Shown here piece by piece: positions 466-19,600 of a DNA stretch of 64,000 bases; position 1 is the stretch's first letter, and the number at the start of each line of letters is the position of its first letter. The notes under the pieces are model-generated. The model saw only the letters and a list, made by a program, of their open reading frames with translations, searched no databases and was not told where the DNA came from. Origin of the DNA: Mantamonas sphyraenae STR306 (taxonomy: Eukaryota; Protista; CRuMs); NCBI GenBank assembly GCA_026936335.1, contig JAPMXV010000023.1:1-64000 (forward strand). The letters run 5' to 3'. The position numbers and the translations under genes were made by a program.

Positions 466-3400
466 ATGGACGACGACTACTCAAGCACTCCGAAGCAGCA
501 ACACACACCCAACACCTACCCAGCGTGCGTTCTGCCTTCCATTCCGTTTTCTGACTGCCCGCTTCTCCCGCTTCCTTGCCCCGTCCATGCCTCCGTCGCT
601 TCCCTGTACTCCTCTCCTGCATCTCCACTTCACCATCACCACCCCTGCTGTCTTCTCCGCTCTTCTTCGATCCCCTCTCCCCTGTCACTGCCCTCCCCGT
701 TGCCAGTTTTCTCGTCAGCCAATCTCCTCCGTTTTCCCTCTCTGCTCGTTCCAGCCTCCCTCCACCCCGCTTCTGCCCTGACGGCGTCCATTCCGCCTTC
801 CGCTCACCGTTTCCACCCCGCCCTCACCCTCCCCGTCTTCCCACAGCTACGCGTACATGGTCCCTCCCATGGCTGCCCAGCCGTTTCCGAACATGCTGCC
901 CGCCTCTGGCGTACAAAACCCGTACCAGCACCCACAACCACCCGTTGTCTGGGTCCCTGTCAACACCCAACCTCAGCAGCACCACGCATATGCTCACCAG
1001 GGCCACCCATACTACGCCTACCCTCCTCCGCCGCCTCCTCAGCCGCGACAAATTGCCCAGATGCACTTCGCTCAGACTCCGTTACACCGTCCGCCTGCTC
1101 AACCCGCCACAAACCACAACCGCGTCCCCAATCGCGTCAGCCCTGCCTTTGTCGGCATCACACGGACCACATCCACCACCACATCGTCCTCCTCCTCCCA
1201 CCAGGACACACGGCAGACTGGAGACAGCGACGACGACGACGCAGACCAGGACACAGCCACACATGACCCCGGCGACGTGGAGGACCTGATGATCCTGAAC
1301 TTTGGCCACCGTGTACCACCGTCAATCTCCTGCAACTCGGAGTGGGTGACCAGCTCAGGGATGGAGGCGTACGAAGAAGACGGCGAGGCAGACGACGCAA
1401 CCCAGCAGCACGTGGACGACGAGTTGGAAACTCAGGGTCCACTCAGCTCTGCAGACACCAGTGATGCCATGGATGAGGAGTACATGCCGCAAGACGACAG
1501 CGACGACGACGCAGACGACATGGAGCAGGAGGACACGGACGAATGGCAGCCGAGACGCACAGGTAGAGGCCACACGCGACGACGCAGAGGCAGATCCAGC
1601 CTTCCCACTGGTTCACACACGGTGAAAGGCAGCGGACAGCGCAGACTCAGGGTCACGGCTGGCAGTGGCACAGAGACAGGAACGTCGAGCACCCGGGCAA
1701 GGAGGGCCAAGAACGGAGACAACGGGACAAAGAAGGGGTCAGGGGCGGAGAAGTCGAACAAGTTGCCAGAAGGTGTTGTGCGCAAAGGGTGGACAGCAGG
1801 ACACAGTGACGAGCGCAGCCGCAGCAACAAGAAGGAGCACACGGCACTGCTGAACCACATGCACACTCTGGCCAACGAGCATCCCATCAACGACATCCCC
1901 GACATCATGACCCTGCAGGCGCGTGTTGTGGTCTGCAATGGCACCCTGCGCACGCTGGTCCGACAGCTCCTGCTCGCTCTGGGCAACATTCCCCTCTCCC
2001 AGGGCGACATGGCACTCTGCCTCACCCTTCTCGGCCTTGACATGGATCAACAGACGTGCAGAAATGCCATCCACCACGCTGGTCTGGCCCTGGGTATCAC
2101 AAAGGCTGGGTTGAAGGTGTGCTGGCTGGAGGAACCACACGACCACGGCGACCCCAACTACGCCCTCCTCAACCTGCTCATGACAGAGATGGACACTCTT
2201 GGCGACAGACCCCATCCCACCACCTGGAAGGAGCACGAGCAGACCCAGCTGTTGCTGCAGGAAGCACGACGCCCTGATGACAACGACAGCGACCCACACT
2301 GGACACAATGCGACTACGACCACCATCTTCCCACCACCAACAAGGTGGACAAGTGGAATCCCGTGTCTGTGCGCAGTGGCTGGAACAGTGGCCCTACCAG
2401 CGACGAGCGTGGCAGCTGCACGGCGCGGGAGTTCCAGACGCTGCTGGCACACATGAAGGCACGCGCAGCCAAGCACCCTCGCCATATCCACACACACGAG
2501 AACCATGCACTGCGTGAGCTGATCAACAACGCCAGCAAGGTGTCCCTTGTGCGACACATCATTCTGGCGCTGGGCAATGTTGGCGTGCCGCCTGTCGACC
2601 TGGCCTTCTTTTTCCGCCTCATTAGACCACGCCTCACCTACAAGCAGGTTCAACAGGTCATCAGCAACACCCTCTCGCGCGGTGTCACCGCCCTCTCCCT
2701 CAAGATCGCCTGGTTGGACAACCCCCATCCCAGCGACGCCACACTGCACACCCTCCTCCACACCCTCATCGACCGCATCACACCCCACATCAACACCCGC
2801 CCTACCACCACTGACGCGGTCAACGCCCTCGACATCCCCAAGCTTGATCTGCCCGAGCCAACAGAGGAGGAGAAGATGGCCGTGGAGGATGAACTGCCAG
2901 ATGGCGTTGTGCGCAGTGGCTGGACGCACTGGCGCAAGAGCGAGCGCAGCCACAGCAACAAGAAGGAGCACACGGCACTGCTGAACCACATGCACACTCT
3001 GGCCAATGAGCATCCCACCGACGACATCCCCGACCTCATGACCCTGCAGGCGCGTGTTGTGGTCTGCCATGGCAACCTGAACACGCTGGTCCGACAGATT
3101 CAGCTCGCTCTGGGCAACATTCCCCTCTCACAGGGCGACATGGCCTTCTTTCTCACCCTTCTCGGCCGAGACATGGATCAAAATGCGTGCTTCCTTGCCA
3201 TCCGCGACGCTGGTCTGGCCACAGGTGTGACAGAGGCTGGGTTGAAGGTGTGCTGGCTGGAGGAGCCACACGACCACGGCGACCCCAACTACGCCCTCCT
3301 CAACCTGCTCATGACAGAGATGGACACTCTCGGCGAATGGCCCCCTCCCACCACCTGGAAGGAGCACAAGCAGACCCAGCTGTTGCTGCAGGAAGCACGA

Positions 3401-4057
3401 CGCCCTGATGACAACGACAGCGACCCACACTGGACACAATGCGACTACGACCACCACCTCACCACTACCAAGGTGGACAAGTGGCATCCTGAGTCTGTGC
3501 GCAGTGGTTGGATCAATGGTCTCAGCGACGAGCGTGGCAGCTGCACGGCGCGGGAGTTCCAGACGCTGCTGGCACACATGAAGGCACGTGCAGCCAAGTA
3601 CCCTCGCCATCAGCATGCGCACGAGAACCATGCACTGCGTGAGCTGATCAACAACGGCCGCAAGCAGTCTCTGGTGCGACACATCATCCTGGCGCTGGGC
3701 AACGTTGGCGTGCCGCCTGTCGACCTGGCCTTCTTTGTTCGCCTCCTCAGACCACGCCTCACCTACAGGCAGGTGCAAAGTGCCATCACTGGCACCCTCA
3801 TCCGAGGCGTCACCTCCCTCTCCCTCAAGATCGCCTGGCTCGACAACCCCAAACCCAGCGACGCCACACTGCACACCCTCCTGCACACCCTCATCGACCG
3901 CATCACACCCCACATCACCACCCGCCCCACCACCGTCGCACTCATCAACGCCTACCCCATCCCCTCCTTCACCCTCCCCAAGCGCAAAGACCCTTCCTCT
4001 TCCTCCTCCTCCTCCTCCTCCTCCTCCTCCTCCTCGAAACGGCAACGCCTCGAATGA
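466..4057 (+). CDS. Subtelomeric modular repeat protein, copy 1 (ABAB), unknown family, predicted nuclear; join(466..524,847..4057)
   Basis: Exon 1 MDDDYSSTPKQQHTPNTYP, donor GTGCGT at 525, pyrimidine-rich intron ending CACAG at 846, in frame with the 1066-aa ORF. P/Q-rich then acidic then basic N-terminus, two ~377-aa AB units, C-terminal KRK...KRQRLE NLS-like tail. Confidence 0.85.
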
Positions 4058-4307
4058 ACCACCCTTCATTCCCACTCCCTCCCACTCACCCACCCTTCCC
4101 ACCCTCTCTCCTCCACATACTCCTCCATCCCACCACACCCAAACATCGCCTCCCTCTCCTCCCCATTCATCACCAACGCCACCTCCATCGCCTCATCCAC
4201 CTGTGCACCCCACCCATCTGCCTTCAACCAAAATATCACCAACACCCACAACATCCCTCCACCAGTCCAACACAATCCACATACACTCCAATACCACCGC
4301 CACCACC

Positions 4308-7300
4308 ATGGACAAGGACTACTCAAGCACTCCGAAGCAACAACACCCACCCAACACCTACCCAGCGTGCGTTCTGCCTTCCACTCCGTTTTCTGACTGC
4401 CCGCTTCTCCCGCTTCCTTGCCTCCTTCTTGCCTCTGTCGCTTCCCTGCACTCCTCCCCTGCATCTCCCCTTCCCCATCATCACCTCTGCTGTTTTCTCC
4501 GCTCTTTTCCGATCCCATCCCCCCTGTCACTGCCCTCCCCGTTGCCAGTTTCCCCGTCTGCCAATCTCTTCCGTTTTCCCTCTTTGCTCGTTCCAGCCTC
4601 CCTTCACCGCCGCTTCTGCCCTGACGGCGTCCATTGCACCTCCCGCTCACCGTTCCCACCCCGCCCATCCCCCTCCCGTCTCCCCACAGCTACGGGTACA
4701 TGGTCCCTCCCATGGCTGCCCAGCCGTTTCCGAACATGCCACCCGGCCAAGTCGTCCAAACCCCGTACCAGCACCCACAATCACCCATCATCTGGGTCCC
4801 TGTCAACACCCATCCCCAGCGACACCACGCGTATGCTCATCAGGGCCACCCATACTACCCCTACCCTCCTCCGCCGCCTCCTCAGCCGCGACAAGCCGCC
4901 CAGATGCACTTCGCTCAGACTTCGTTTCACCCTCCGCCTGCTCAACCCACCACAAACCACAACCGCGTCCCCAAACGCATCAGCCCTGCCTTTGTTGGTA
5001 TCACACGGACCACATCCACCACCACATCGTCGTCCTCCTCCCACCAGGCCACACGGCAGACTGGAGACAGCGACGACGACGACGCAGACCAGGATACACA
5101 CACACATGACACCGGCGACGTGGAAGACCTCATGTTCCTGAACTTTGGCCACCGTGAACCACGGTCAGTCTCCAGCAACACAGAGTGGATGACCAGCTCA
5201 GGGATGGAGGCGTACGAAGAAGACGGCGAGGCAAACGACGCAACCCAGCAGCAAGGGGACGACGAGTTGGACACTCAGGGAGGACTCAGCTTTGCAGACA
5301 CTGGTGATGCCATGGATGAGGAGTACATGCCGCAAGATGACAGCGACAACGACACAGACGACATAGAGCAGGAGGACAGGGACGAATGGCAGCCGAGACG
5401 CACAAGTAGAGGCCACAAGCGACGAGGAAACCACGCCAGTCGTCGTACCGGTTCACAACAGGTGAAAGGCAGCGGACAGCGCAGGCTCAGGGTCACGGCT
5501 GGCAGTGGCACCGAGACAGGAACGTCGAGCACACGGGCAAGGAGGGACAAGAACGGAGACACCGGCGCTGGGAAGTCAGCAAGCGTGAATAAGAAGAACA
5601 AGTTGCCAGATGGAGTTGTGCGCAAAGGGTGGGCGGTTGGTGGTGACCACTGTGATCGCAGCCACAGCAACAAGAAGGAGCACACGGCACTGCTGAACCA
5701 CATGCACACCCTGGCCAACGATCATCCCATCGACAATATCCCCGACATCATGGCACTGCAGGCGCGCGTTGTGGTCTGCAATGGCACCCTGTTGACGCTG
5801 GTCCGACAGATTCAGCTCGCTCTGGGCAACATTCCCCTCTCCCAGGGCGACATGGCCTTCTGCGTCAACCTTCTCGGTCGAAATGAGTATCGATTGGCGT
5901 GCAGAAAAGCCATCCACCACGCTGGTCTGGCCATGGGTGTGACCAAGGCTGGGTTGAAGGTGTGCTGGATGGAGAAGCCACACGACCACGGCGACCCCAA
6001 CTACGCCCTCCTCCACCTGCTCATGACAGAGATGGACACTCTTGGCGACAGACCCCATCCCACCACCTGGAAGGAGCACAAGCAGACCCAGCTGTGGCTG
6101 CAGGAAGCACGACGCCCCGCTGACAACGACAGCGACCCACACTGGACACAATGCGACTACGACCACCACCTTGCCACCACCAATGTGGAAAAGTGGCATC
6201 CCGAGTCTGTGCGCAGTGGCTGGAGCAACGGTCCCAGCGACGAGCGTGGCAGCTGCACGGCGCGGGAGTTCCAGACGCTGCTGGCACACATGAAGGCACG
6301 CGCAGCCAAGCACCCTCGCCATGAGCACACACACGAGCACCAGGCACTGCGTGAGCTGATCAACAACGGCAGCAAGCAGTCCCTGCTGCGACACATCATC
6401 CTGGCGCTGGGCAACGTTGGCGTGCCGCCTGTCGACCTGGCCTTCTTTGTCCGCCTCCTCCGGCCACACCTCACCTACAAGAAGATGCGAAATGCTATCA
6501 GCGACACCCTCACTCGTGGCGTCACCTCCCTCTCCCTCATGATCGCCTGGTTGGACAACCCCAAACCCAGCGACGCCACACTGCACACCCTCTTGCACAC
6601 CCTCATCGACCGCATCACACCCCACATCAACACCCGCCCCACCACAGTCGACGCCGTCAACGCCCTCTACATCCCCGAGCTTGTTTTGCCCGAGCCCACA
6701 GAGGAGGAAGTGGTGGCCGTGGAGGATGGACTGCCAGATGGAGTTGTGCGCAGTGGTTGGACGTCATGGCGCAAGAGCGAGCGCAGCCACAGCAACAAGA
6801 AGGAGCACACGGCACTGCTGAACCACATGCACACTCTGGCCAACGAGCATCGCATCGACGACATCCCCGACCTCATCACCCTGCAGGCTCGCGTTGTGGT
6901 CTGCCATGGCACCCTGACCACGCTGGTCCGACAGATTCAGCTCGCTCTGGGCAACATTCCCCTCTCCCAGGGCGACATGGCCTTCTGCCTCACCTTTCTC
7001 GACCGTGACATGGATCAACTGGCGTGCAGCCAAACCATCATCAAAGCTGGTCTGGCCATGGGTGTGACAGAGGCTGGGTTGAAGGTGTGCTGGCTGGAGG
7101 AGCCACACGACCACGGCGACCCCAACTACGCCCTCCTCCACCTCCTCCTGACAGAGATTGACACTCTCGGCGACAGGCCCCATCCCACTACCTGGAAGAA
7201 GCACAAGCAGACCCAGCTGTGGCTGCAGGAAGCACGACGCCGTGCTGACAACGACAGCGACCCACACTGGACACAATGCGACTACGACCACCACCTCACC

Positions 7301-7876
7301 ACCACCACGGTAGACAAGTGGTATCCTGAGTCTGTGCGCAGTGGCTGGAGCACCAACCTCTACAACGACGAGCGTGGCAGCTGCACGGCGCGGGAGTTCC
7401 AGACGCTGCTAGCACACATGAAGGCACGCGCAGCCAAACACCCTCGCCATCAGCACGAACACGAGCACCATGCACTGCGTGAGATGATCAACAACGGCAA
7501 CCTGCTGTCCCTGCTGCGACACATCATCCTGGCGCTGGGCAACGTTGGCGTGCCGCCTGTCGACCTGGCCTTCTTTGTCCGCCTCCTCAGGCCACGCATC
7601 ACCTACCAGCAGGTCTGCCCTGCCATCAGCGCCACCCTCACCCGCGGCGTCACCTCCCTCTCCCTCAAGATCGCCTGGCTCGACAACCCCCAACCCAGCG
7701 ACGCTACACTGCACACCCTCCTCCACACCCTCATCGACCGCATCACACCCCACATCTCCACCCGTCCGACCACCGTCGCACTCGTCAACGCCTACCCCAT
7801 CCCCCCGCTCACCCTCGCCAAGCGCAAAGAACCTTCCTCCTCCTCATCCTCCTCGAAACGCCAACGCCTCGAATGA
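4308..7876 (+). CDS. Subtelomeric modular repeat protein, copy 2 (ABAB); join(4308..4366,4690..7876)
   Basis: Same exon 1, intron position and splice signals as copy 1. ORF intact and highly similar. Confidence 0.85.
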
Positions 7877-8182
7877 ACCACCCTTTCGTTCCCACACCCT
7901 TCCCACTCACCCTCCCCTCTCCAGCCACCCAATCACCCTCTCTATCACCTCATTCGTCAGTGTCACCCACCCTCCCACCCTCTCTCCTCCACATACGCCT
8001 CCATCCCACCACACCCAAACATCGCCTTCCCCTCTTCCCCATTCATCACCAACCCCGTCTCTTTAGCCTCATCCACCTGTGCAGCCCACCCATCTGCCTT
8101 CAACAAAAATATCACCAACACCCACAACACCCGCCACCTGTCCAACGCAATCCACATACACTCCAGTTGCACCACCGCCACC

Positions 8183-10629
8183 ATGGACAAGGACTACTCA
8201 AGCACTCCGAAGCAACAACACACACCGAACACCTACCCAGCGTGCGTTCTGCCTTCCACTCCGTTTTCTGACTGCCCACTTCTCCCGCTGCCATGCCTCC
8301 TCCATGCCTCCGTCGCTTCGCTGCACTCCTCCCCTGCCTCTCCACTTCCCCGTCACCGCTGTTGCTGCCTTTTCCGCTCTTCTCCGATCCCCTCCCCCCT
8401 GTCACTGCCCTCCCCGTTGCCAGTTTTCCGGTCTGCTCATCTCCTCCGTTTTCCCTCTCTGCTCGTTCCAGCTTCCCTTCACCCCGCCTCTCCCCTGACG
8501 GCGTCCATCCCGCCTTCCACTCACCGGTCCCTCCCCACCCTGCCCCTCCGCGTCTCCCCCACAGCTACGCGTACATGGTCCCTCCCATGGCTGCCCAGCC
8601 GTTTCCGAACATGATGCCCGTCTCTGGCGTACAAAACCCGTACCAGCACCCACAACCACCCATCATCTGGGTCCCTGTCAACACCCACTCCCAGCAGCAC
8701 TACGCATATGCTCACCAGGGCCACCCATACTACGCCTACCCTCCTCCGCCGCCTCCTCAGCCGCGACAAACCGCCCAGATGCACTTCGCTCAGCCTCCGC
8801 TGCACCGTCCGCCTGCTCAACCCACCACAAACCACAACCGCGTCCCCAAACGCGTCAGCCCTGCCTTTGTCGGCCTCACACGGACTACATCCACCACCAC
8901 ATCGTCGTCGTCCTCCCACCAGGCCACACGGCAGACTGGAGACAGCGACGACGACGACGCAGACCAGGATACACACACACATGACACCGGCGACGTGGAG
9001 GACCTGATGTTCCTGAACTTTGGCCACCATGAACCACGGACAACCTCCAGCAACTCAGATTGGATGACCAGCTCAGGGATGAAGGCGTTCGAAGAAGACG
9101 GCGAGGCAGACGACGCAACCCAGCAGCAAGTGGACGACGAGTTGGAAACTCAGGGTGCACTCAGCTTCGCAGACACTGATGATGCCATGGATGAGGAGTA
9201 CATGCCGCAAGACGACAGCGACGACGACACAGACGACTTGGAGCTTGAGGACATGGACGAATGGCAGCCGAGACGCACAGGAAGAGTACGCACACGACGA
9301 CGCAGAGGCCTCACCAGTACTGGTCCACAGAAGATGAAAGGCAGTGGACAGCGCAGGCTCAGGGTCACGGCTGGCAGTGGCACAGAGACAGGAACGTCGA
9401 GCACACGGGCAAGGAGGGCGGAGAACGGAGACACCGGTGCACGGAAGAAAGCAGGCGTAGACAAGACGAACAAGTTGCCGGATGGAGTTGTGCGCAAAGG
9501 GTGGACAGGGGGACACAGTGACGAGCGCAGCCACAGCGACAAGGAGGAGCACACGGCACTGCTGATCCACATGCACACTCTGGCCAACGAGCATCGCGTC
9601 GACGACATTCCCGACCTCATGACCCTCCAGGCGCGTGTTGTGGTCTGCCATGGCACCCTGACCACGCTGGTCCGACAGATTCAGCTCGTTCTGGGCAATA
9701 TTCCCCTCTCCCAGGGCGACATGGCCTTCTGCCTCACCCTTCTCGGCCGTGACATGGATCAACATGCGTGCAGCCGTGCCATCATCAGCGCTGGTCTGGC
9801 CGTGGGTGTGTCAAAGGCTGGGTTGAAGGTGTGCTGGCTGGAAGAGCCACACGACCACGGCGACCCCAACTACGCCCTCCTCCACCTGATCATGACAGAG
9901 ATGGACACTTTCGGCAGCAGAGCCCATCCCGCCACCTGGAAGGAGCACAAGGAGACCCAGCTGTGGCTGCAGAAAGCACGACGCCCAGCTGACAACGACA
10001 GCGACCCACACTGGACTCAATGCGACTACGACCATCACCTTGCCACCACCACGGTGGAAAAGTGGGAACCAGAGTCTGTGCGCAGTGGCTGGGCAACGCA
10101 CAATCCCAGCGACGAGCGTGGCAGCTGCACGGCGTGGGAGTTCCAGACGCTGCTGACACACATGAAGGCACGCACAGCCAAGCACCCTCGCCATCAGCAT
10201 ACACATGAGCACCATGCACTGCGTGAGCTGATCAACAACGGCAGCCTGAATTCCCTTGTGCGACACATCATCCTGGCGCTGGGCAACGTTGGTGTGCCGC
10301 CTGTCGACCTGGCCTTCTTTGTCCGCCTCCTCAGACCACGCCTCACCTACCAGCAGGTGCAAGGTGCCTTCAAGCACCCCCTCACCCGCGGTGTCACCTC
10401 CATCTCCCTCAAAATCGCCTGGCTCGACAACCCCCAACCCAGCGACGCCACACTGCACACCCTCCTCCACACCCTCATCGACCGCATCACACCCCACATC
10501 ACCACCCGCCCCACCACTTTCGCGCTCGTCAACGCCTACCCCATCCCCTCCTTCACCCTGCCCAAGCGCAAAGTCCCTTCCTCTTCCTCCTCCTCCTCCT
10601 CCTCCTCCAAACGCCAGCGCCTGGAATGA
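8183..10629 (+). CDS. Subtelomeric modular repeat protein, copy 3 (single AB unit); join(8183..8241,8565..10629)
   Basis: Same gene structure, with only one A and one B module before the conserved C-terminal tail. Confidence 0.85.
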
Positions 10630-10658: not shown

Positions 10659-12702
10659 TCACCCTCCCCTCCCCACCCACCCAATCACCCTCTCCATCAC
10701 CTCATCCGGCAGTGTCACCCACCCTTCCCACCCTCTCTCCTCCACATACGCTTCCATCCCTCCACACTCAAACATCGCCTCCCTCTCCTCCCCGTTCATC
10801 ACCAACCCCACCTCCATCGCCTCATCCACCTCCGCACTCCACCCAATCCAATGCCACGCCTTCCTCCACCCTGCCTCCCTCACAATCTCCACCGTTTCCA
10901 TCCTCGGCCTCGCACCCCACCCCCGCAACACCTCAACCAACCCGTCCTCCCCTCCCTTCACCCCTCTCTCCAGCGCAGTTTCCTTCCCTCCATCCCCTGC
11001 AAACGTGTCCACAGGCACCCCCCCCTCCTTCAACGCACCCATCTTCTCCAAATCCCCACACTCCACAAACTCCACATGCATGTCCTTGTTCCTCTCCAAC
11101 AGCGACCGCAACGCGTCATTACGAACGCCTTCGAAGTTCCAGCACGACCGATTGCCTTCCATCGCTTGAACAACTGCTGCTGCGCTTTCTGCCCCGATGC
11201 GGTTGCTACCAAGGTCCAGTCTCTGCAAGCTTCTGTTCTCACTCAGTCTCTGCCCCATAGCTGTTGCTCCTTCATCCCCGATGCTGTTGTAGCCGAGGTA
11301 CAGTGTCTGCAAGCTACTGTTCTCCCTCAGTGCCTGCCCCAGTGCTGCTGCTCCTTCGTCCCCGATGCTGTTGAAGCCAAGTAACAGTGACTGCAAGCTG
11401 CCGTTCTCACTCAGTCCTTGCCTCAGTGCTGCTGCTCCTTCTGCACCGATATTGTTATCACTGAGGTCCAGTCTCTGCAAGCTACTGCTCTCGCTCAGTC
11501 CCTTCCCCATTGCTGCTGCTCCTTCGTCCCCGAGGCTGTTGTAGCCAAGGAACAGTGCCTGCAAGCTGCTGTTGTCACTCAGTGCCTGCGCCAATGCTGC
11601 TGCTCCTGCTGCACCCATTCTGTTGTCCCAGAGATTCAGTGTCTGCAAGCTGCTGTTTGCGGTCAGGGCCTGCGCAAGTGCTACTGCTCCTTCTGCCCCG
11701 ATGCTGTTGTTTTCCAGGTTCAGTGTCTGCAAGCTGCTGTTCCCACTCAGTGCCTGCGCAAATGCTGTGGCTCCTTCTGAACCGATGCTGTTGCTCTGGA
11801 GGTACACTTTCTGCAAGCTGCAGTTGTCACCTAGTGCCTGCGCCAGTGCCGCTGCTCCTTCTGACCCGATGCTGTTGCTCTGGAGGTGCACTGTCTGCAA
11901 GCTGCTGTTCTCACTCAGTGCTTGCGCCAGTTCTGCTGCTCCCTCTGCCCCAATTCTGTTGAGGGTGAGAAACAGTGTCTGCAAGCTTCTGTTCTCCCTC
12001 AGTGCTTGCGCCAGTGCTGCTGCACCTTCTGCACCGATGTTGTTGTCGCTGAGTTCCAGTGTCTGCAACATACCGTGCTCACAAAGTGCCTGCGCCAGTG
12101 CTGCTGCGCCTTCTGCCCCGATGCTGTTGCTACCTAGGGACAGTGTCTGCAAGGTGCTGTTCTGACTCAGTCTCTGCGCCAGAGCTGCTGCTCCTTCTGC
12201 CCCGATCCCGTTGTATTCCAGGTTCAGTGTCTGCAAGCTACTGTTCTCACAAAGTGCCTGCGCCAGTGCTGCTGCGCCTTCTGCCCCGATGCTGTTGCTA
12301 TCTAGGGACAGTGTCTGCAAGGTGCTGTTCTCAATTAGTGCCTGCGCAAGTGCCACTGCTCCTTCTGCCCTGATGCTAGTGCTGTCGAGGTCCAGCGTCT
12401 GCAAGCTGCTGTTCTGAGCCAGTGCCCGCGCTAGTGCCACTGCTTCCTTGTCTCCCAGGTCCACGTTGCGAAGGTGCAGTTCCTGTGTGCAACCTGTCAA
12501 CACACGCTCCATCCTTTCCTACATACCCTACACCCATCCCTCCTCCTCCTCCCCTCGTTCGACGATCAAACGTCACGCTCGCCACCTCCCTCCCGATTTC
12601 TTTCGGCCAACTCACCCTTCCTTGAGCCTGTAAAGCTTCCACAATCCGCCCATGGTCCCCGCTCTGCAACAACTCCACCCATCTACCTTTTGCCAATCCC
12701 AT
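10659..12702 (-). CDS. Ribonuclease-inhibitor-type (28-aa, NLRC3-like) LRR protein with C-terminal ankyrin-like repeat and LPDE motif; join complement(12616..12702,10659..12482)
   Basis: About 16 repeats of LxxLxLxxNxIGAEGAAALAQALxxNxS. Tail GVPVD...ETALERGVKGGEDGLVEVLRGWGA (ankyrin-like) and TLPDEVMERVIGWV. Exon 1 ends at a GTGAGT donor and the CACAG acceptor keeps frame. Confidence 0.85.
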
Positions 12703-12939
12703 ATCCTGCGCACTTCCATGAGTGTCAGCTCCTCCCGATTCCTCCCTCCCGTGTCACTCTCTATCCCACCCACACACGCCACAAGTCCCCCCCCCCCACC
12801 CTTCCCTACCCGATGACTGTTCCGAACTCTGTGTGTGTGCAATATGCGTTGGATGCGCCCCCGCACGGAGGACGAGCAGCACTCAAAAAAATCCTTTTCT
12901 TCCACACCTTCACATCCCTTCATTCCCACTCCCTCCCAC

Positions 12940-14414
12940 TCACCCTCCCCTCCCCACCCACCCAATCACCCTCTCCATCACCTCATCCGGCAGTGTCATC
13001 CACTGTGCAGTCGGTTCATACTCCTCCATCCCTCCACACCCAAACATCGCCTCCCTCTCCTCCCCATTCATCACCAACCCCACCTCCATCGCCTCATCCA
13101 CCTCCACACTCCACCCAATCCAATGCCACGCCTTCCTCCACCCTGCCTCCCTCACCATCCCCACCGTTTCCATCCTCGGCCGCGCGCCCCACCCCCGCAA
13201 CACCTCAACCAACCCGTCCTCCCCTCCCTTCACCCCTCTCTCCAGCGCAGTCTCCTTCCCCCCATCCCCTGCAAACGTGTCCACAGGCACACCCCACTCT
13301 CTCAACTCTCTCATCTTCTCAAAATCCCCACACTCCACAAACTCCATGTGCTTCCCCTTGTTTCTCTCCAACAAAAACTGCAGCGCATCGTTCTCGATTC
13401 CCCGAACATCCCAGCACGAACGGTTGCCTTCCAGTCCAACAACCAACGCTGCTTCTCCCACGCGGTTCTCCCCGAGATCCAAAATCTGCAAACTGCTGTT
13501 CGCAACCAACGCCACTGCCAAAGCTGCCGCCCCATTCCCCCCTATGGCATTTCCTCGTAGCCCCAGCCACGTCAGCGTGCTGTTGCGATGCAGACTTTCC
13601 GCCAACGCGCACGCTGCGTCGTTGCCGACCTTACAGCTCGAAAGATCCACCGTGCGCAAGGTGCAGTTCCCACGCAGTGCTCCTGCTATTGCCGCCACTC
13701 CTTCTCTCCCCACGCCATTGTTCCACATGATCAGCACCTCCAAACCATCCAGCGCACGCGCAAGGGCCGCCGCCCCCACGTCCCCAATCCCGTTCCAGCT
13801 CACGCTGAGCCTCCTCAGACTCCTGTTCTCCATCAAACCCTCTGCAATTGCCTCCATCCCAACATCTCCAATGCCGTTATAGGTTAGATCTAGGGTGTGC
13901 AGCCCTGTGTTCCGCTGCAGTGCCGCGCCCAGCGCTCGTGCCCCCTTTTCGCCAATGCGGTTGTTCCACAAGGACAACACCTGCAGTCCACAGTTCACAA
14001 GCAACAATGCTGCCAGTTTCTCCGTTCCCTTATCCCCAATGGCGTTCCTGTTCAAATCCAGCGTCGAAAACCCTTCGCTCTCCACCAGCCCATCAGCCAG
14101 CGCTGCAGCTCCTTCTTCCCCAAGCGTCACCCAATGCAACTTCACCACCTGCAACATTCGGCCATCAGTTCCCTCTTCCCTCCCGCGCAACCCCCCATCC
14201 CACCCCCCACCCCCCCCCCCCCCCCCTTCACCACCTGCAACATTTGGCCATCAGTACCTCTTCCCTCCCGCGCAACCCCCCATCCCACCCCCCACCCCCC
14301 ACCCCCCTACCTCCCCCTCCTCCCAAAACCCACCTTTCCAGCCTCCCCCACCACCACCTTCACCCTTTCGACATCCCCACTCACAACTGCATCCTCTAAC
14401 CCTTCCGTGTTCAT
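12940..14414 (-). CDS. Paralogous RI-type LRR protein with the same ankyrin-like/LPDE C-terminus; join complement(14334..14414,12940..14148)
   Basis: About 9 LRRs and a C-terminal ~150 aa nearly identical to the previous gene. Exon 1 MNTEGLEDAVVSGDVERVKVVVGEAGK resembles exon 1 of the paralog (SGDxxR...G[KR]) and has a phase-0 intron at the same place. Confidence 0.82.
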
Positions 14415-16657
14415 CAAACCCCCATTCCATTGCCCTCACTCCCGCCTTCATCCGCCCACCCATCCCAACTCCTCTCCATCATCTCCTCCATCCTCTCAAC
14501 CCCCACCACCGCCTCCTCCCACTTCCACCGCCTTGCCATACCTGCACACACCTCCCTCGCCGTCTCCACCCGTTCCAACACGTGGCTCTGCAACGCAACT
14601 CCGCCCAGAAACCGTTCCATCTCTGCGCACACCTCCACGCCCTCCTCCGCTCGTCCCAACCCATGCACAACCATCACCGCCTCCACCTTGTGCTGCCATC
14701 GCCACCCATGCCGCAACACACGCGCGTACCCCTCCGACCGCCTCCCATAAACACCCGCCGCGTGCACCACCGCCTTGTCCAACAGCCGCCCACGCTCCTC
14801 TTCGTCCAGCTCCGCCAACAATAGATACGCCTCCACCAATCCGCCTCGAATCCGCGTGTCTGGATGGTGCTTCACAAGCGCCTCCCGTCGCCCGACTGCC
14901 CGGCGCAGGTTTGTTCTCGCACGCCGTGTCTCCCCCTGCTTCATCCGCAGCCGCCCACGCACTTCGTCCCTGTCCGCACGCATCATCACACGTTGGTCCT
15001 CTGTGCTCCCTCCCGTCCTCACGTTTCGCGTCACCCGCCGCACCGCCGCCTCCGCCCGGCCAAGTGCCCCGTCCTCCTTCACCAGCGCCTGTGCCACGCC
15101 CACAAGCACCACATGCCTCACATACGCGTCTTCCACCCTGTGTGTTCTCATCAACGCCTGTGCACGCAGCAGATCCGCGCGAGTTCCCTGCAGCCCGTGC
15201 GCCAACACCGCCCGCTCCACCAACTTTGCTCCATCTTCCCTCTCCTTCCGCTCCATCGACCACCACTCCCACACACCTACTTGTCCCACTGCGTCCACGG
15301 CCCGCTCTGCAAGTCGCAACACCTGCTTGGCGTGCTCCCCGACAACCGCTGCCTCCCTTGCCAGCCCTGCATTCCTCAGCACAACCTCATTCAGCGCCCC
15401 CAGCAGCTCGCTCGTCTCCGTCTGCGTAAGACTGCGCACATTGTGCGCCAGCGCGTCCCTGTATCCCGGCTCCACAGAGAATAGCCGAGGCATCTGTTCG
15501 CTCGGCACAACAATCGACCGCCCCTCCAGCTGTCGTATCGCTGCCTGTGCCTCAGCTTCGCTGCAGCACTCACACGCCGTCTCCAGCACGTCCTCATGCA
15601 CCAACGCCTTTGGCCCCACCGTGTTCAAAACCTTTAGCAAACAACCCGTGCACGCCTCCCTCCGCATCCGTTGCACGTGTCGGTTCCTCTTTGTCGCCGC
15701 ACTGTGCACCCCGTCTACCTGTGTATGTGCCACGGCAGGTCTGCTACCCCATGCACTCCCGCGTCCGTGTTCGCGCAGGTACGCGCTCATCACATCCACC
15801 TCAAACTCCATCTGCTCCCCAAGCCGTTCCACCTGCTCCCTCCGCATCCCATGCCCACCTCCACTCGCCAGCTTGGCCATTTCCATCAGCTCATTGCTGT
15901 CCAGCTTGCTCGAAAGGCGCACAACCTTGGGCGAGTACGCCCCGAGGTGCCTGTGCGCCCCTGAATCCCTCCCCACAAACACAATCGACCCGTTCTCCAG
16001 CCCAATCCTCTCCACCACGCTCGCCAGTCGCCTGCGGTCCTCCACACTGACCCCATCCAGCACAAGCACCCAACGCGTCTCGCGGTCCAACCCCTGCACC
16101 CACCGCGCCACATGCGCCGTGTGCGACTCCCCAAGGTTTGCCCCGCCCAGCCTCTCACTCAGGTCTTCCATGCACCCCTCCAATCCCTGGCCCGTGCCCA
16201 TCAACCATTCTGCCTCGGTGTCTTGCGTCTGCAAATGTGCCACCGCGCTGCTTTTCCCACACCGTGTCGGCCCAGTGATCACAACCACCTCCCCTCCCTT
16301 CAACCGCAGCCCTCTTGTCGCTGTTCGTTGTACAGTCTGGCTCCGCACCACCCACAGCTGCTGCCGCCGCCGTTTCTCTTCTGCCGCCCTTGCCACCGCC
16401 TTCTCCCTCTCTCGCCGCTCCTCCTCCGCCACCCTCTCCCGGCCCTTTTCATACTCCGAGTACCCAAAGTACACGACAAACGGAATCGCCATCCCCTGCA
16501 GAACATTTGCCCCTGCGTTCACAAACGGCAACACGCGCCGAACTTTGCCCATCACCTCCGGATCCACTCCCGGCCCTCCCAGACCAGTGATCAACTCTCT
16601 CCTCCCGCCAATCACGCGCACCCCATTCCCCCTCAGCTTCAACCGTCGCATCATCAT
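14414..16657 (-). CDS. STAND/NB-ARC-like P-loop NTPase with N-terminal hydrophobic segment and C-terminal TPR-like helical repeats
   Basis: Walker A VVVITGPTRCGKS, Walker B WVLVLDG, winged-helix-like AQAAIRQLEGRSIV, Ala/Leu-rich helical C-terminus. N-terminus is basic, then hydrophobic (VLQGMAIPFVVYFGY), then a coiled-coil-like stretch. Divergent, so the family assignment is an inference. Confidence 0.55.
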   Translation of the reverse strand: MMMRRLKLRGNGVRVIGGRRELITGLGGPGVDPEVMGKVRRVLPFVNAGANVLQGMAIPFVVYFGYSEYEKGRERVAEEERREREKAVARAAEEKRRRQQLWVVRSQTVQRTATRGLRLKGGEVVVITGPTRCGKSSAVAHLQTQDTEAEWLMGTGQGLEGCMEDLSERLGGANLGESHTAHVARWVQGLDRETRWVLVLDGVSVEDRRRLASVVERIGLENGSIVFVGRDSGAHRHLGAYSPKVVRLSSKLDSNELMEMAKLASGGGHGMRREQVERLGEQMEFEVDVMSAYLREHGRGSAWGSRPAVAHTQVDGVHSAATKRNRHVQRMRREACTGCLLKVLNTVGPKALVHEDVLETACECCSEAEAQAAIRQLEGRSIVVPSEQMPRLFSVEPGYRDALAHNVRSLTQTETSELLGALNEVVLRNAGLAREAAVVGEHAKQVLRLAERAVDAVGQVGVWEWWSMERKEREDGAKLVERAVLAHGLQGTRADLLRAQALMRTHRVEDAYVRHVVLVGVAQALVKEDGALGRAEAAVRRVTRNVRTGGSTEDQRVMMRADRDEVRGRLRMKQGETRRARTNLRRAVGRREALVKHHPDTRIRGGLVEAYLLLAELDEEERGRLLDKAVVHAAGVYGRRSEGYARVLRHGWRWQHKVEAVMVVHGLGRAEEGVEVCAEMERFLGGVALQSHVLERVETAREVCAGMARRWKWEEAVVGVERMEEMMERSWDGWADEGGSEGNGMGV

Positions 16658-16678
16658 GTCTATTCTATTCCCTTGCAC

Positions 16679-19600
16679 CTAAAGGCGCTCCGCGATCAGC
16701 CCACGCACCTTCACCACACTCTCCCCACGCAGCCGCGTCCAGTCCATCACTCCACCTTCCACCTCTGCCCGCGCACTCTCCCACTCTCCCTCATCCAGCG
16801 ACGACACCCGGTCGTAGTACCACGCCAACCGTTCCCGGTTCTCCTCGGCCCACCCGTCCATCACTCCCATGTACGATTCCTTCCCGCCCGGCCGCACCCC
16901 GTTTGCAAAACTCTGCAGCGCTTTGCTCATCAGCTTCAACGTCGTCATGCTCTCTCTGCCCGGTGCCGTCTCTGTAAACAGCTTCACCTTGAACAGATGC
17001 GGCGTCACCCAACGCAGAAACAACGTGTTTGCCAACGCCCCGGCATACCGCTCCTCCCCGACCACCTCACGCATCACCGCAAACACAGCTCGCATCTCCA
17101 ACGGCATTTCCTCCACCGCATCCACCAGCCCGTCCATCACCGCCGTGCACAGATTTGCCAGACGCGCCGCATCTTCCTCGCTTGCCTCTTTCCCTGGCCC
17201 CATCTCCACGGCCACCTTGTCCTCCACCACATGCCGCACCACGTCTCCCACCACACGTTCCATGTGTTCCAATCCCTGACGCGCCATAAATCGCGTCATG
17301 ATCTTGCTCTCCAGCGAATCCAGACGCAGCAACGGCGCTGCCCCGTTCTTGCTCTTTTCCACCTGCAGCTCCATCAGCACACGCACCAGCCTCCCCATCT
17401 GCTTCCCACACACAAACACCTCCAGCAGGTGCTCCGCCATTTCGTCCACCGCCTCCCCATAGTTCAGCTTCACCACACGTTCCAGCAGCGGCGGATCACG
17501 CGCAAACAAAACGCTCGGCATCACCACAATGCTCATCTGCTGCGTCCGTATCTGCTCCACAACCTCCATCTCGTCCTCTCCCCCCACCACCTGCGACACG
17601 TCCGAGTATGCGTCGTCCATCGCCAGCGCACTCACGTCTCCGGCCTCCACATCCCTCGGCGCCCGGATGACCCCGGTTGCCAGCGGGTCCACAAACGGCT
17701 CCCCGTCCTCCGCCGCCTCCTCCAGCTCTCCATACTTCAGCTTCAGTCTCGATTCCGGGTGTCCCTCTCGCGCCGCCCGCTCGTAAAGCCGTTGTGCTGC
17801 CCCAATGTTCCTCGCCACTCCGGCTCCTTCCTGGTACAGCCGCCCCAGGTTGTACAGCGCCTCCACGTGCCCTCCCAACGCACCCAGCCGATACCAACGT
17901 GCAGCCTCTTCCAGACTCTGCGCCACCCCCAGCCCTCGCTCGTGCAACATGCCCAGCGCGTTCTGGCAATGTGCATCCTCTGCAAGCGCCCCGTCTTGAA
18001 AGTACTGCGCCGCCAGACGCACGTTCTGCTCCACCCCTATCCCTTCCAGCAGCATGTCCGCCACTCGCACCACGCTTTCCATGTGTCCCCCGTCCGCTGC
18101 CAGGGTGTAGTGCCGAAACGCAAGCCACGCGCTCTGCTCCACCTCCAGCCCGTGCTCGTACATCACTCCCAGGTGGTACGCCGCCTCGCTGCTGCCCATG
18201 TCCTGTGCCAGTCGCAACATGCGCGCCGCCTCAAAGTACTGCTGCTGCTGCAGGTACATGTACCCGAGATTGCACATCCCAGCCGGGTGGTGCTTCTCCG
18301 CCGCCGCCTTGTAATGCTTCATCGCCAGCGCCAGGTCCTGCGGCACTCCGTCCCCGCACTCTCGTAGCACGTGCCCAGGTTGTTTGCTGCCGACGCGTTC
18401 CCGCTTGCCGCCGCGCTGGCAAACAGCTCCACTGCCCGCACCTTGTCCGTGTACACCCCGTTGTCCTCCTTAAACAGCAGCGACCCCAGATTGTTCTGTG
18501 CCGTCGCCTGCCCGCCTCGACACGCCAGTTCGTAGTACTCCATAGCCTTTTGCAGCCCGCCCATCACCAGTCCCTTTTCGTACAGGTAGCCCAGCGCCGC
18601 TGCTGCGTCGTAGTGGCCCTGCAGCGCCGCCTTGTTGTAGTACTCTGCCGCCACTCCAATGTCTCGCGACACACCCACGCCTCGCTCGTACAGCGAGCCC
18701 AGCGCATACGCAGCCGCCGGCCACCGCGTCGCCGCCATGTCGTACCAGTGTGCCGCCAGCGCCGGGTTTGCATCCCTGCCCAGCCCGTGCTCAATCATGT
18801 GTCCGATGTTGTACTGTGCAGGCGCATACGGCACCGCCGCTGCACGTTCGTACCGTGCGTATGCCACCTGGTAGCTCTGCGGATACCCGTACCCGAAAAA
18901 AGTACTTGTCTCCCTGCGCCGTCAGCTGGATCGCGTCGTCCTGGTCCAGCTCCTTCCAATCGTTGAACCCAGGCAGACCTGCCGCCAGCGCCAGTTTGCT
19001 CACGTTACTGCTCGCCTCCCCGGCCTCGTCCAGGCCCCGTGTCGCCAGCGCCAGCGTCAGAGCGCTTGTAAAATCGTTCACCTGGTACCCAAACTCCCTC
19101 TGGATCTTTTCAAACCGTTCCCCATGCTTGCTCTGCTGCCGAAACCCCGACGCGTCCTTCATGCTGCGCCCGTCCTCTCCCTGTGTCAGTCTTCCTCTCT
19201 GCACCCTTCTTCCGCACTCGCAAAAACAAAACTTCTGCGCGCCACCTACATTCCCAGCTCCCCGTTGCTCGTCTCCAGAAAGTTCACAAAGCTCAACAGC
19301 GACTGCTTCACCATCTTGTCCTCCGAATGTGCCTGCAGCACCCTCGACAGTTTCTCCAGCAGATTCTACACCGAGCACGCGCCCCGATTCCTCAATGTCA
19401 GCCAACGGCCGCCCGCCAAAATCCGTTCCCGCTCCCTCCCTCCCTCCCTCCCTCCCTCCTTCCCTCCTTCCCCCCCGTCCCCGCTCCCCTCACCTGAGCC
19501 TGCGCACACCGGTTCATAAACTCATCGCTCGCCTTCAACTTCTGCTTGCTCACCAACCCTTCCGCCAACCGATACGTGTCCGCCAACAAACTCTCCAGCC

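Follow-up and report, generated by a model that had tools for sequence, protein, structure and literature searches.

The left end of a contig from the deep-branching protist Mantamonas sphyraenae carries three members of a large, telomere-anchored gene family whose products look like modular DNA readers of a type not described before. With a probability of roughly 0.55, we favour a diversifying repertoire of nuclear DNA-recognition proteins whose way of working resembles that of the KRAB zinc fingers and which belongs to none of the families tested. The features at this end of the window (the whole 64,000-nucleotide stretch of DNA analysed) are as follows.

1–174, no strand: telomere repeats (TAACCC)n at the left end of contig C23, on the basis of sequence.
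466–4057, + strand: gene 1 (exon 1 466–524, intron 525–846, exon 2 847–4057), 1089 aa, module order ABAB.
525–846, + strand: gene 1 intron, on the basis of transcript depth and gene models.
847–1759, + strand: gene 1 N-terminal region, P/Q/H/Y-rich, then acidic, then basic.
1760–2350, + strand: module A1, with V1 at 1793–1813, V2 at 1943–1954, the V3 helix at 2048–2086 and position 102 at 2063.
2351–2890, + strand: module B1, with V1 at 2384–2404, V2 at 2534–2545, the V3 helix at 2639–2677 and position 102 at 2654.
2891–4054, + strand: modules A2 (2891–3478) and B2 (3479–4054), with the C-terminal bipartite NLS-like tail.
4058–4215 (also ~7880–8132), − strand: relic of the neighbouring LRR gene's 3' end, carried within the tandem unit.
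4308–7876, + strand: gene 2, 1081 aa, ABAB (A 5600, B 6191, A 6728, B 7316).
4367–4689 and 8242–8564: equivalents of the gene 1 intron in genes 2 and 3.
8183–10629, + strand: gene 3, 707 aa, AB (A 9472, B 10060).
10659–12512, − strand: convergent LRR_6 repeat gene with 84-bp units and a conserved tail.

The first-pass annotation had placed ten modules of two subtypes, A and B, at 1760–10560, and the modules are indeed there, arranged ABAB, ABAB and AB across the three genes (gene 1 starts: A 1760, B 2351, A 2891, B 3479); the gene starts themselves lie farther upstream, with ATGs at 466, 4308 and 8183. Every string it quoted for the variable patches V1, V2 and V3 recurs in the translation. The repeat unit is 180–197 aa long and occurs in obligate A-B pairs. 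The homology proposed between subtypes is clear (hhalign 98.4%, E 8e-15, 31% identity over 70 columns), and the same columns vary in both (Spearman rho 0.44 for per-site dN rate, p 2e-8), with subtype B containing a fourth variable patch at module positions 48–53, beyond the three originally described. Module B is basic (pI 10.6) and module A slightly acidic (pI 6.3).

The gene 1 product consists of a low-complexity N-terminus, the ABAB modules and an NLS-like tail. The N-terminal region (48% P/Q/H/Y, then 35% D+E, then 28% K+R) is conserved in paralogs, and the tail, KRK-polySer-KRQRLE, has the bipartite NLS-like character first ascribed to it and is retained by almost every gene whose end lies inside the examined loci. 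The exon-1 peptide is polar, with no signal-peptide-like N-terminus on inspection of hydropathy, nor do the module proteins contain a clear transmembrane segment, the highest 19-residue hydropathy (1.86) falling within the predicted folded core. Each of genes 1–3 has a 322–323 nt GT-AG intron. Expression, a point the annotation had listed for confirmation, is seen at the gene 1 joint 524 to 847 (GT..AG), which has a transcript depth of 2401 in run X4 only; in that run the depth is 279 inside the intron versus 12,571 in the adjacent bin. The family is spliced and transcribed.

Genome-wide, what had been described as a three-gene family comprises at least ~130 genes with more than 600 modules (at least 323 A modules, at least 307 B modules and ~130 N-termini), which amounts to 1.4% or more of the 9,416 genes predicted in the organism. 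A module gene is the first gene inside most chromosome ends, its position and orientation fixed at ~0.45 kb from the telomere; the copies listed lie almost all at contig ends, point inward and are often tail-to-tail with an LRR gene. At many chromosome ends the LRR_6 gene comes next on the inward side of the module gene, with ~380 candidates for its tail, and the relic of it in the window (38/44 identity, E 9e-24) corresponds to repeat families D10 and D13.

Sequence analyses cover the window and the 30 best-matching loci, a sample biased to intact copies close to gene 1. No stops or frameshifts occur in 125 distinct module cores and pN/pS is 0.37–0.43 outside the variable sites; the scaffold is under purifying selection. 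At position 102 the dN rate is 11 versus a dS of 0.5 in subtype A, and 26 versus 0.1 in subtype B. Sites picked in A also come out as selected when tested in B (LRT p 3e-6), and the reverse cross-test, of B sites in A, gives omega ~1, these tree-based tests being inflated by recombination. In neutral free-recombination simulations, the pN of 0.65–0.75 at A positions 13, 64 and 102 was reached in 0/1500 runs, as was the 0.69 at B position 102. The pooled pN/pS of 1.8–2.2, for sites chosen from the data, has p 0.0004–0.036 at simulated rates reaching the observed pN, and single sites give only p 0.02–0.06 against a mutation-hotspot null. Of the diversifying selection suggested at the outset, the excess of amino-acid change at homologous positions holds for V3 and V2; positive selection at V1 is unsupported because synonymous change is raised there too, so V1 is variable and not clearly selected. 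Synonymous diversity is also raised at some V3 codons.

The excess change maps to one face of one helix. Variability on helix 3 points 148–168 degrees away from its hydrophobic face, in keeping with the original description of V3 as an amphipathic helix with a variable exposed face. Helix 3 alone has such a hypervariable face, with a mean entropy at polar positions of 1.6–1.9 bits versus 0.0–0.7 bits on the six other helices, where these positions are conserved. On this face Q, S, K, N, H and R are abundant and aromatics few, and L, I, V and P are common at positions 102 and 105. V3 codons vary in all four bases, and there is no template repeat among the window's repeats; a diversity-generating retroelement target was rejected on both counts. 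Linkage drops to background beyond ~60 bp, V1, V2 and V3 are uncorrelated and nearly all patch combinations are distinct (59/62 and 60/63): the patches reassort freely between paralogs.

The annotation recognised no known family, and no homologue was found in any library searched. The module B, AB region and core profile queries found none among 5.8 billion proteins; JGI metagenomes, IMG/VR, GTDB genomes, Pfam, PHROGs, PDB sequences and the ESM Atlas likewise returned no homologue (the gene model being searched as exon 2 sequence), and Foldseek gave no match to PDB or viral structures. A profile search of 1.84 billion representatives gave zero matches even to the family itself, and eukaryote coverage therefore limits the meaning of that blank. 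Pfam matched nothing in the three window proteins, including no helicase, RT, integrase or nuclease domain; membership of the Y', TLH or telomeric retrotransposon families was rejected for want of a helicase or reverse-transcriptase domain in these genes. A literature search on Mantamonas subtelomeres or a similar family found nothing.

AlphaFold models contain a three-helix core (helices 63–74, 81–91 and 97–109), the AB model being poor (pLDDT 46). HTH proteins dominate the searches with both models, ~45 of the 50 top neighbours over residues 58–128 being HTH-class as read from their titles, at structural Z ≤5.6 (VIA search), which is below significance and graded uninformative by the tool. 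RpoN (Z 5.6, rmsd 2.7 over 52 aa) and ArgR (Z 5.0, rmsd 2.5 over 50 aa) are among them. No named HTH family emerged by sequence profile from Pfam, PDB profiles or hhalign (ArgR against the modules, probability 0.5%), and the PF01316 and PF01498 profiles have no match at module loci. A resemblance to LOTUS, E2F or Tc1/mariner HTH2 was not confirmed: PF01498 matches nine other loci and not the modules, and none of the three ranked in the structure lists. The beta wing proposed earlier does not appear in the models, where the region is helix or coil at low confidence (pLDDT 52–58 and 26–44) and no strand is predicted. V2 does precede the first helix of the HTH-like core, with two further helices ahead of it in the model. 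The proposed three-helix HTH fold with V3 as recognition helix finds weak support in the two structure searches.

Aligned without gaps along E. coli RpoN, the A profile scores best on the RpoN-box HTH, in the top 0.05% of 6409 decoy windows; this register test was made after the structure match was seen, and B did not pick that window. Position 98 falls on R456 in this register, and the variable sites on the base-reading helix; a change at R456 rewires promoter specificity (PMC12096077). In the ArgR register positions 101/102 fall on the SR motif, which is needed for binding (PMC5291005).

In our preferred reading, the proteins would probably be nuclear, and each would consist of successive A-B pairs of a single helical domain with a three-helix HTH-like core. 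DNA, the likely ligand, would be read by the third helix V3 (98, 101/102, 105/106), the first-helix cap V2 and the N-terminal arm V1, while the low-complexity N-terminus would recruit transcription or chromatin machinery in a presumed regulatory role. Recombination or gene conversion between ends would homogenise the scaffold and shuffle the patches, and selection for new reading-face residues would build up a repertoire with specificities in the hundreds. Transposons or viruses as targets are a matter of speculation.

In KRAB zinc fingers change concentrates on a handful of residues in a single helix, at ~i, i+4 and i+7/8. The module proteins share with these and PRDM9 a large clustered family, tandem modules, an N-terminal effector-like region, a constant scaffold and one-helix change; they differ in having 180–197 aa modules in obligate pairs, genes at chromosome ends, binding that is predicted, and no C2H2 motif, KRAB or SET domain. 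Membership of the KRAB/C2H2 arrays was rejected, with no Pfam match in the three proteins and the motif absent from the alignments. KZFPs are described as a large clustered family with an N-terminal effector-like region (PMC5363842). Near-identical repeats, hypervariable positions and reshuffling by recombination recall TAL effectors, which match the module proteins in neither sequence nor fold. A TALE repeat spans 34 aa and reads one base, in bacterial, secreted proteins. Membership was rejected on the repeat unit (180–197 aa versus 33–35 aa with a repeat-variable diresidue) and the lack of a Pfam/PDB match. Tri-helical and winged HTH regulators (sigma54 RpoN box, ArgR/AhrC, MarR/PadR, CRP) are the top structural neighbours; the match scores are below significance, the module shows no wing in the models and has extra helices flanking its core, and these regulators are neither arrayed nor hypervariable. 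The Candida albicans TLO genes are telomere-associated Med2 homologues in 15 copies (PMC4214616, PMC5908203). With TLO, yeast Y' and TLH the family shares telomere-associated expansion and, putatively, a nuclear-regulator likeness, whereas it has ~ten times more copies, no Med2/helicase domain, a modular build and a selected helix face.

HTH folds also bind protein and RNA, as in LOTUS and Z-alpha, and the modules might instead be intracellular receptors whose variable helix face binds foreign (viral or symbiont) proteins or RNA, forming an innate-immune cassette with the adjacent LRR genes. The diversifying LRR family, which at many ends faces the module gene in convergent orientation, the hydrophobic residues on the face and the non-basic module A fit such a role, which we nevertheless judge rather unlikely: polar residues of base-reading type make up most of the face, Y/W/F being nearly absent, module B is strongly basic, the NLS-like tail and transcription-factor-like N-terminus point elsewhere, and subtelomeric co-location is expected for any fast-evolving family. 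It is quite improbable that the family is a selfish or structural telomere-associated element, comparable to yeast Y' or the TLH helicase genes, spreading by inter-end recombination, its protein binding subtelomeric DNA of its own kind and its variation reflecting self-recognition or conflict among ends. Fixed placement near the telomere and tandem units that grow by unequal exchange, bringing the neighbour relic along, are as this would predict; against it, the genes are spliced, expressed and host-like, no terminal repeats were seen and the mobility domains sought with Pfam are absent. Such a protein would still be a DNA binder and therefore overlaps our main reading.

Less likely still is a reading without any role in recognition, in which gene conversion keeps the family uniform and the patches are just surface positions that tolerate change, or hotspots of mutation or conversion; the raised synonymous diversity and modest single-site hotspot p values agree with this, but polar positions of the other six helices are conserved, A and B vary at matching columns with no more than ~31% identity between them, and the pooled pN/pS, its sites chosen from the data, stands against it. 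Variant surface antigens of the VSG, var or MSG kind, selected by predators or parasites, are hardly credible despite the telomere-adjacent multigene family and hypervariable patches, given the lack of a signal-peptide-like N-terminus, the hydropathy maximum of 1.86 inside the predicted folded core and the basic NLS-like C-terminus.

The DNA-recognition repertoires so far known to diversify are mainly those of animal zinc fingers and bacterial TALEs. Tentatively, and on balance doubtfully, the family could be a third natural modular, re-targetable DNA-reading array beside these two, its HTH-like A-B modules serving genome defence; specificity would be set by ~five helix residues and two patches, in arrays kept at every chromosome end and shuffled by inter-telomere recombination in a lineage near the Amorphea root. 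Even with a ligand other than DNA, a gene family that takes up this share of the genome's genes and has no known relative would call for an explanation. If our preferred reading is true, a convergent repertoire built from another domain in a free-living CRuMs protist would represent an independent origin, and would tie DNA recognition to subtelomeric recombination as its diversifier. With over 600 natural variants of a nearly constant scaffold at hand, a specificity code can be tested directly, and a new programmable scaffold for binding DNA could result.

All ten modules of the first-pass annotation are present on translation, along with every variable string quoted there, and the proposed homology of subtypes A and B was borne out by hhalign (98.4%, E 8e-15 over the core). 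The three module genes each contain a single intron after a short first exon; searches with the spliced model used exon 2 as query.

1-174: telomere repeats in the sequence at the left end of the contig
ATG 466, intron 525-846: gene 1, 1089 aa in frame
ATG 4308, intron 4367-4689: gene 2, 1081 aa in frame
ATG 8183, intron 8242-8564: gene 3, 707 aa in frame

Sequencing depth in run X4 is nil upstream of 380, and 279 within the gene 1 intron versus 12,571 immediately after it, while the joint of 524 to 847, with GT..AG ends, is present in X4 alone among the runs; we read X4 as an RNA run, though it is labelled DNA with a query mark. As X4 contigs derive from many paralogs, expression is established for the module family rather than for gene 1 specifically. 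Relatives ~90-97% alike occur at low depth in a 2024 biofilm metagenome, so the family extends beyond the cultured strain.

AlphaFold2, using an A+B alignment, predicts module B (pLDDT 70) as seven helices (residues 25-41, 48-60, 63-74, 81-91, 97-109, 114-122 and 129-146) with a disordered V1 arm; the model of an AB pair is poor (46) with the same helices as the B model. V2 caps helix 63-74 and V3 is helix 97-109, where variability lies opposite the hydrophobic face, as expected of the amphipathic helix originally described, and polar positions are conserved in the remaining helices. Foldseek and Atlas searches returned no match. Wide VIA searches with B residues 58-128 and, independently, A residues 58-118 returned lists of which about nine-tenths are HTH-class proteins (best Z 5.3 and 5.6, respectively), including CRP, PadR, MarR, RpoN, ArgR, Fur, Lrp, Z-alpha and RecQ. 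For the predicted models, these lists show a compatible three-helix arrangement, homology not being implied. Of the suggested winged HTH fold, the three-helix core is weakly but consistently supported; the AlphaFold2 models contain no β wing. In a post hoc test, which B did not bear out, the A profile aligned ungapped to sigma54 of E. coli at its RpoN-box HTH, placing module position 98 on R456, a residue whose substitution alters promoter specificity (PMC12096077). A weak alignment of A to the ArgR HTH (E 0.13) places positions 101/102 on the ArgR Ser-Arg pair, which is required for binding (PMC5291005). The most likely reading, at a probability of roughly 0.55, is that the family forms a nuclear DNA-recognition repertoire; that the proteins are instead immune receptors binding protein or RNA seems rather unlikely.

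The M. sphyraenae FALCON assembly comprises 25.06 Mb in 78 contigs (mean 321,299.41 bp) with 9,416 genes, and 59 contigs carry TTAGGG at both ends (PMC10492846). The assembly searched here for module genes, in which the window opens contig C23, has 25,061,354 bp in 78 contigs. Conserved patterns gave at least 323 A and 307 B modules and 135 N-terminal matches, a few of these by chance, and the core profile gave 700 candidates. Listed forward-strand copies lie near contig starts (first at ~1.7-1.8 kb), and listed reverse-strand copies cluster contig by contig at high coordinates, which we read as right contig ends; module genes therefore face inward from the telomere. An inverted cluster lies on contig C29 (75-103 kb). 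ABAB is the form of most genes, with AB, three-pair and longer forms also occurring. In many cases the module genes at a contig end are followed immediately by a convergent LRR gene, and the spacers between the window's module genes contain a relic of the LRR gene's 3' end, suggesting array growth through unequal exchange. This placement would suit a telomere-associated element that recognises others of its kind; the module proteins contain no enzyme domain, and we think this reading improbable.

Inward of the module genes, the window contains two LRR_6 genes sharing a tail (10659-14190, reverse), an adjoining frame of 754 aa (14414-16678, reverse) that matches AAA_16 (STAND-like) weakly, at E 0.017, and Sel1 repeats with a RasGAP domain in one frame (16679-18370, reverse). 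Across the genome there are ~380 candidates for the LRR_6 tail, which by eye is ankyrin- and F-box-like with no Pfam match; many of them lie just inward of a module gene and others in long arrays (C29, C73, C76). Nine near-identical weak Tc1-type HTH matches (C14, C17, C29, C40, C41, C44, C57, C58 and C68) are probably a transposon family unrelated to the modules.

The window and its 30 best-matching loci yielded distinct cores of 62 A and 63 B modules, all free of stops and frameshifts in this sample of best matches; shorter frames do occur elsewhere in the genome. With the variable sites set aside, pN/pS is 0.37-0.43. In a codon-model scan, position 102 lies far above neutrality in A and B alike, with 63/64 and 106 likewise elevated and, in B, also 37, 48, 52, 53, 101 and 126. 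A's ten fastest sites gave dN 4.5 versus dS 2.0 in B (p 3e-6); B's fastest gave omega ~1 in A, yet evolve faster than the remaining sites (p 4e-5). Linkage reaches background beyond ~60 bp, four-gamete violations rise to 0.87-0.95, and V1, V2 and V3 are mutually uncorrelated, indicating that patches are reshuffled among paralogs. Because recombination inflates tree tests, we ran a neutral free-recombination codon simulation. At the family's background rate the observed pN was never reached at 102 (A, B) or at 13 and 64 (A); tested against mutation hotspots as the null, V2 and V3 pooled (ratio 1.8-2.2) gave p 0.0004-0.036 at rates attaining the observed pN, and single sites p 0.02-0.06 at best. 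The diversifying selection first proposed for all three patches is thus supported for V2 and V3, and these results make it quite improbable that the patches are simply tolerant sites. At V1, where A modules fall into two position classes (first versus later modules), synonymous diversity is high and indels are present, so selection is not demonstrated. All four bases vary, ruling out DGR-like mutation. In B, the His-rich loop at 41-53 (e.g. window 2471-2509) contains an apparently selected fourth patch (48, 52, 53), possibly a metal site or additional contact surface.

The proteins run from a P/Q-rich, acidic, then basic N-terminus through a string of A-B pairs to a conserved KRK-polySer-KRQRLE end; that such proteins are surface antigens is very hard to credit. 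At loci L025 and L030 a second N-terminal type, found in some second-in-array genes, replaces the P/Q-rich and acidic part upstream of the first A module and joins the common basic linker. Single frameshifts outside the modules, real or assembly errors, lie in the poly-Ser tail, removing KRQRLE (L014, L015), or in the N-terminus (L012). On C29, two module genes are fused in frame via a shortened N-terminal region (L011:826-1500). Three loci (L004:3541-4122, reverse, C29 ~97.8-98.4 kb; C29 ~79.2-79.8 kb; C69 264343-264879) carry an additional domain, 190 aa long or more, which in the 3224-aa frame on C29 lies downstream of several modules and closes with a bipartite basic motif resembling that of the module genes. 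This domain has no match in Pfam or PDB, and is possibly the effector domain of a rare variant.

In agreement with the initial failure to recognise a family, no homologue was found in libraries of 5.8 billion proteins and 1.84 billion representatives, JGI metagenomes, IMG/VR or GTDB, and we found no paper describing the modules. Even the genome's own module proteins were not found in these protein libraries, so the blank searches say little about other protists; repeats were masked ahead of gene prediction (PMC10492846), which is perhaps the cause. KRAB-ZNF and TALE arrays are alike in working logic but their defining features are lacking here, and Candida TLO and yeast Y' genes are similarly placed but the modules contain neither the TLO nor the Y' domain. 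No tested family matches the module family, although its logic is like that of known arrays; DNA is a putative ligand.

The module family is real, expressed, under selection and undescribed. As a DNA-recognition repertoire, helix 3 of each module would read a few bases, assisted by V2 and V1, and A-B pairs and strings of pairs would extend the recognised site. Recombination at subtelomeres would reshuffle the patches and selection would retain new ones. Our guess, taking KRAB zinc fingers as the analogy, is that mobile or viral DNA drives this selection.
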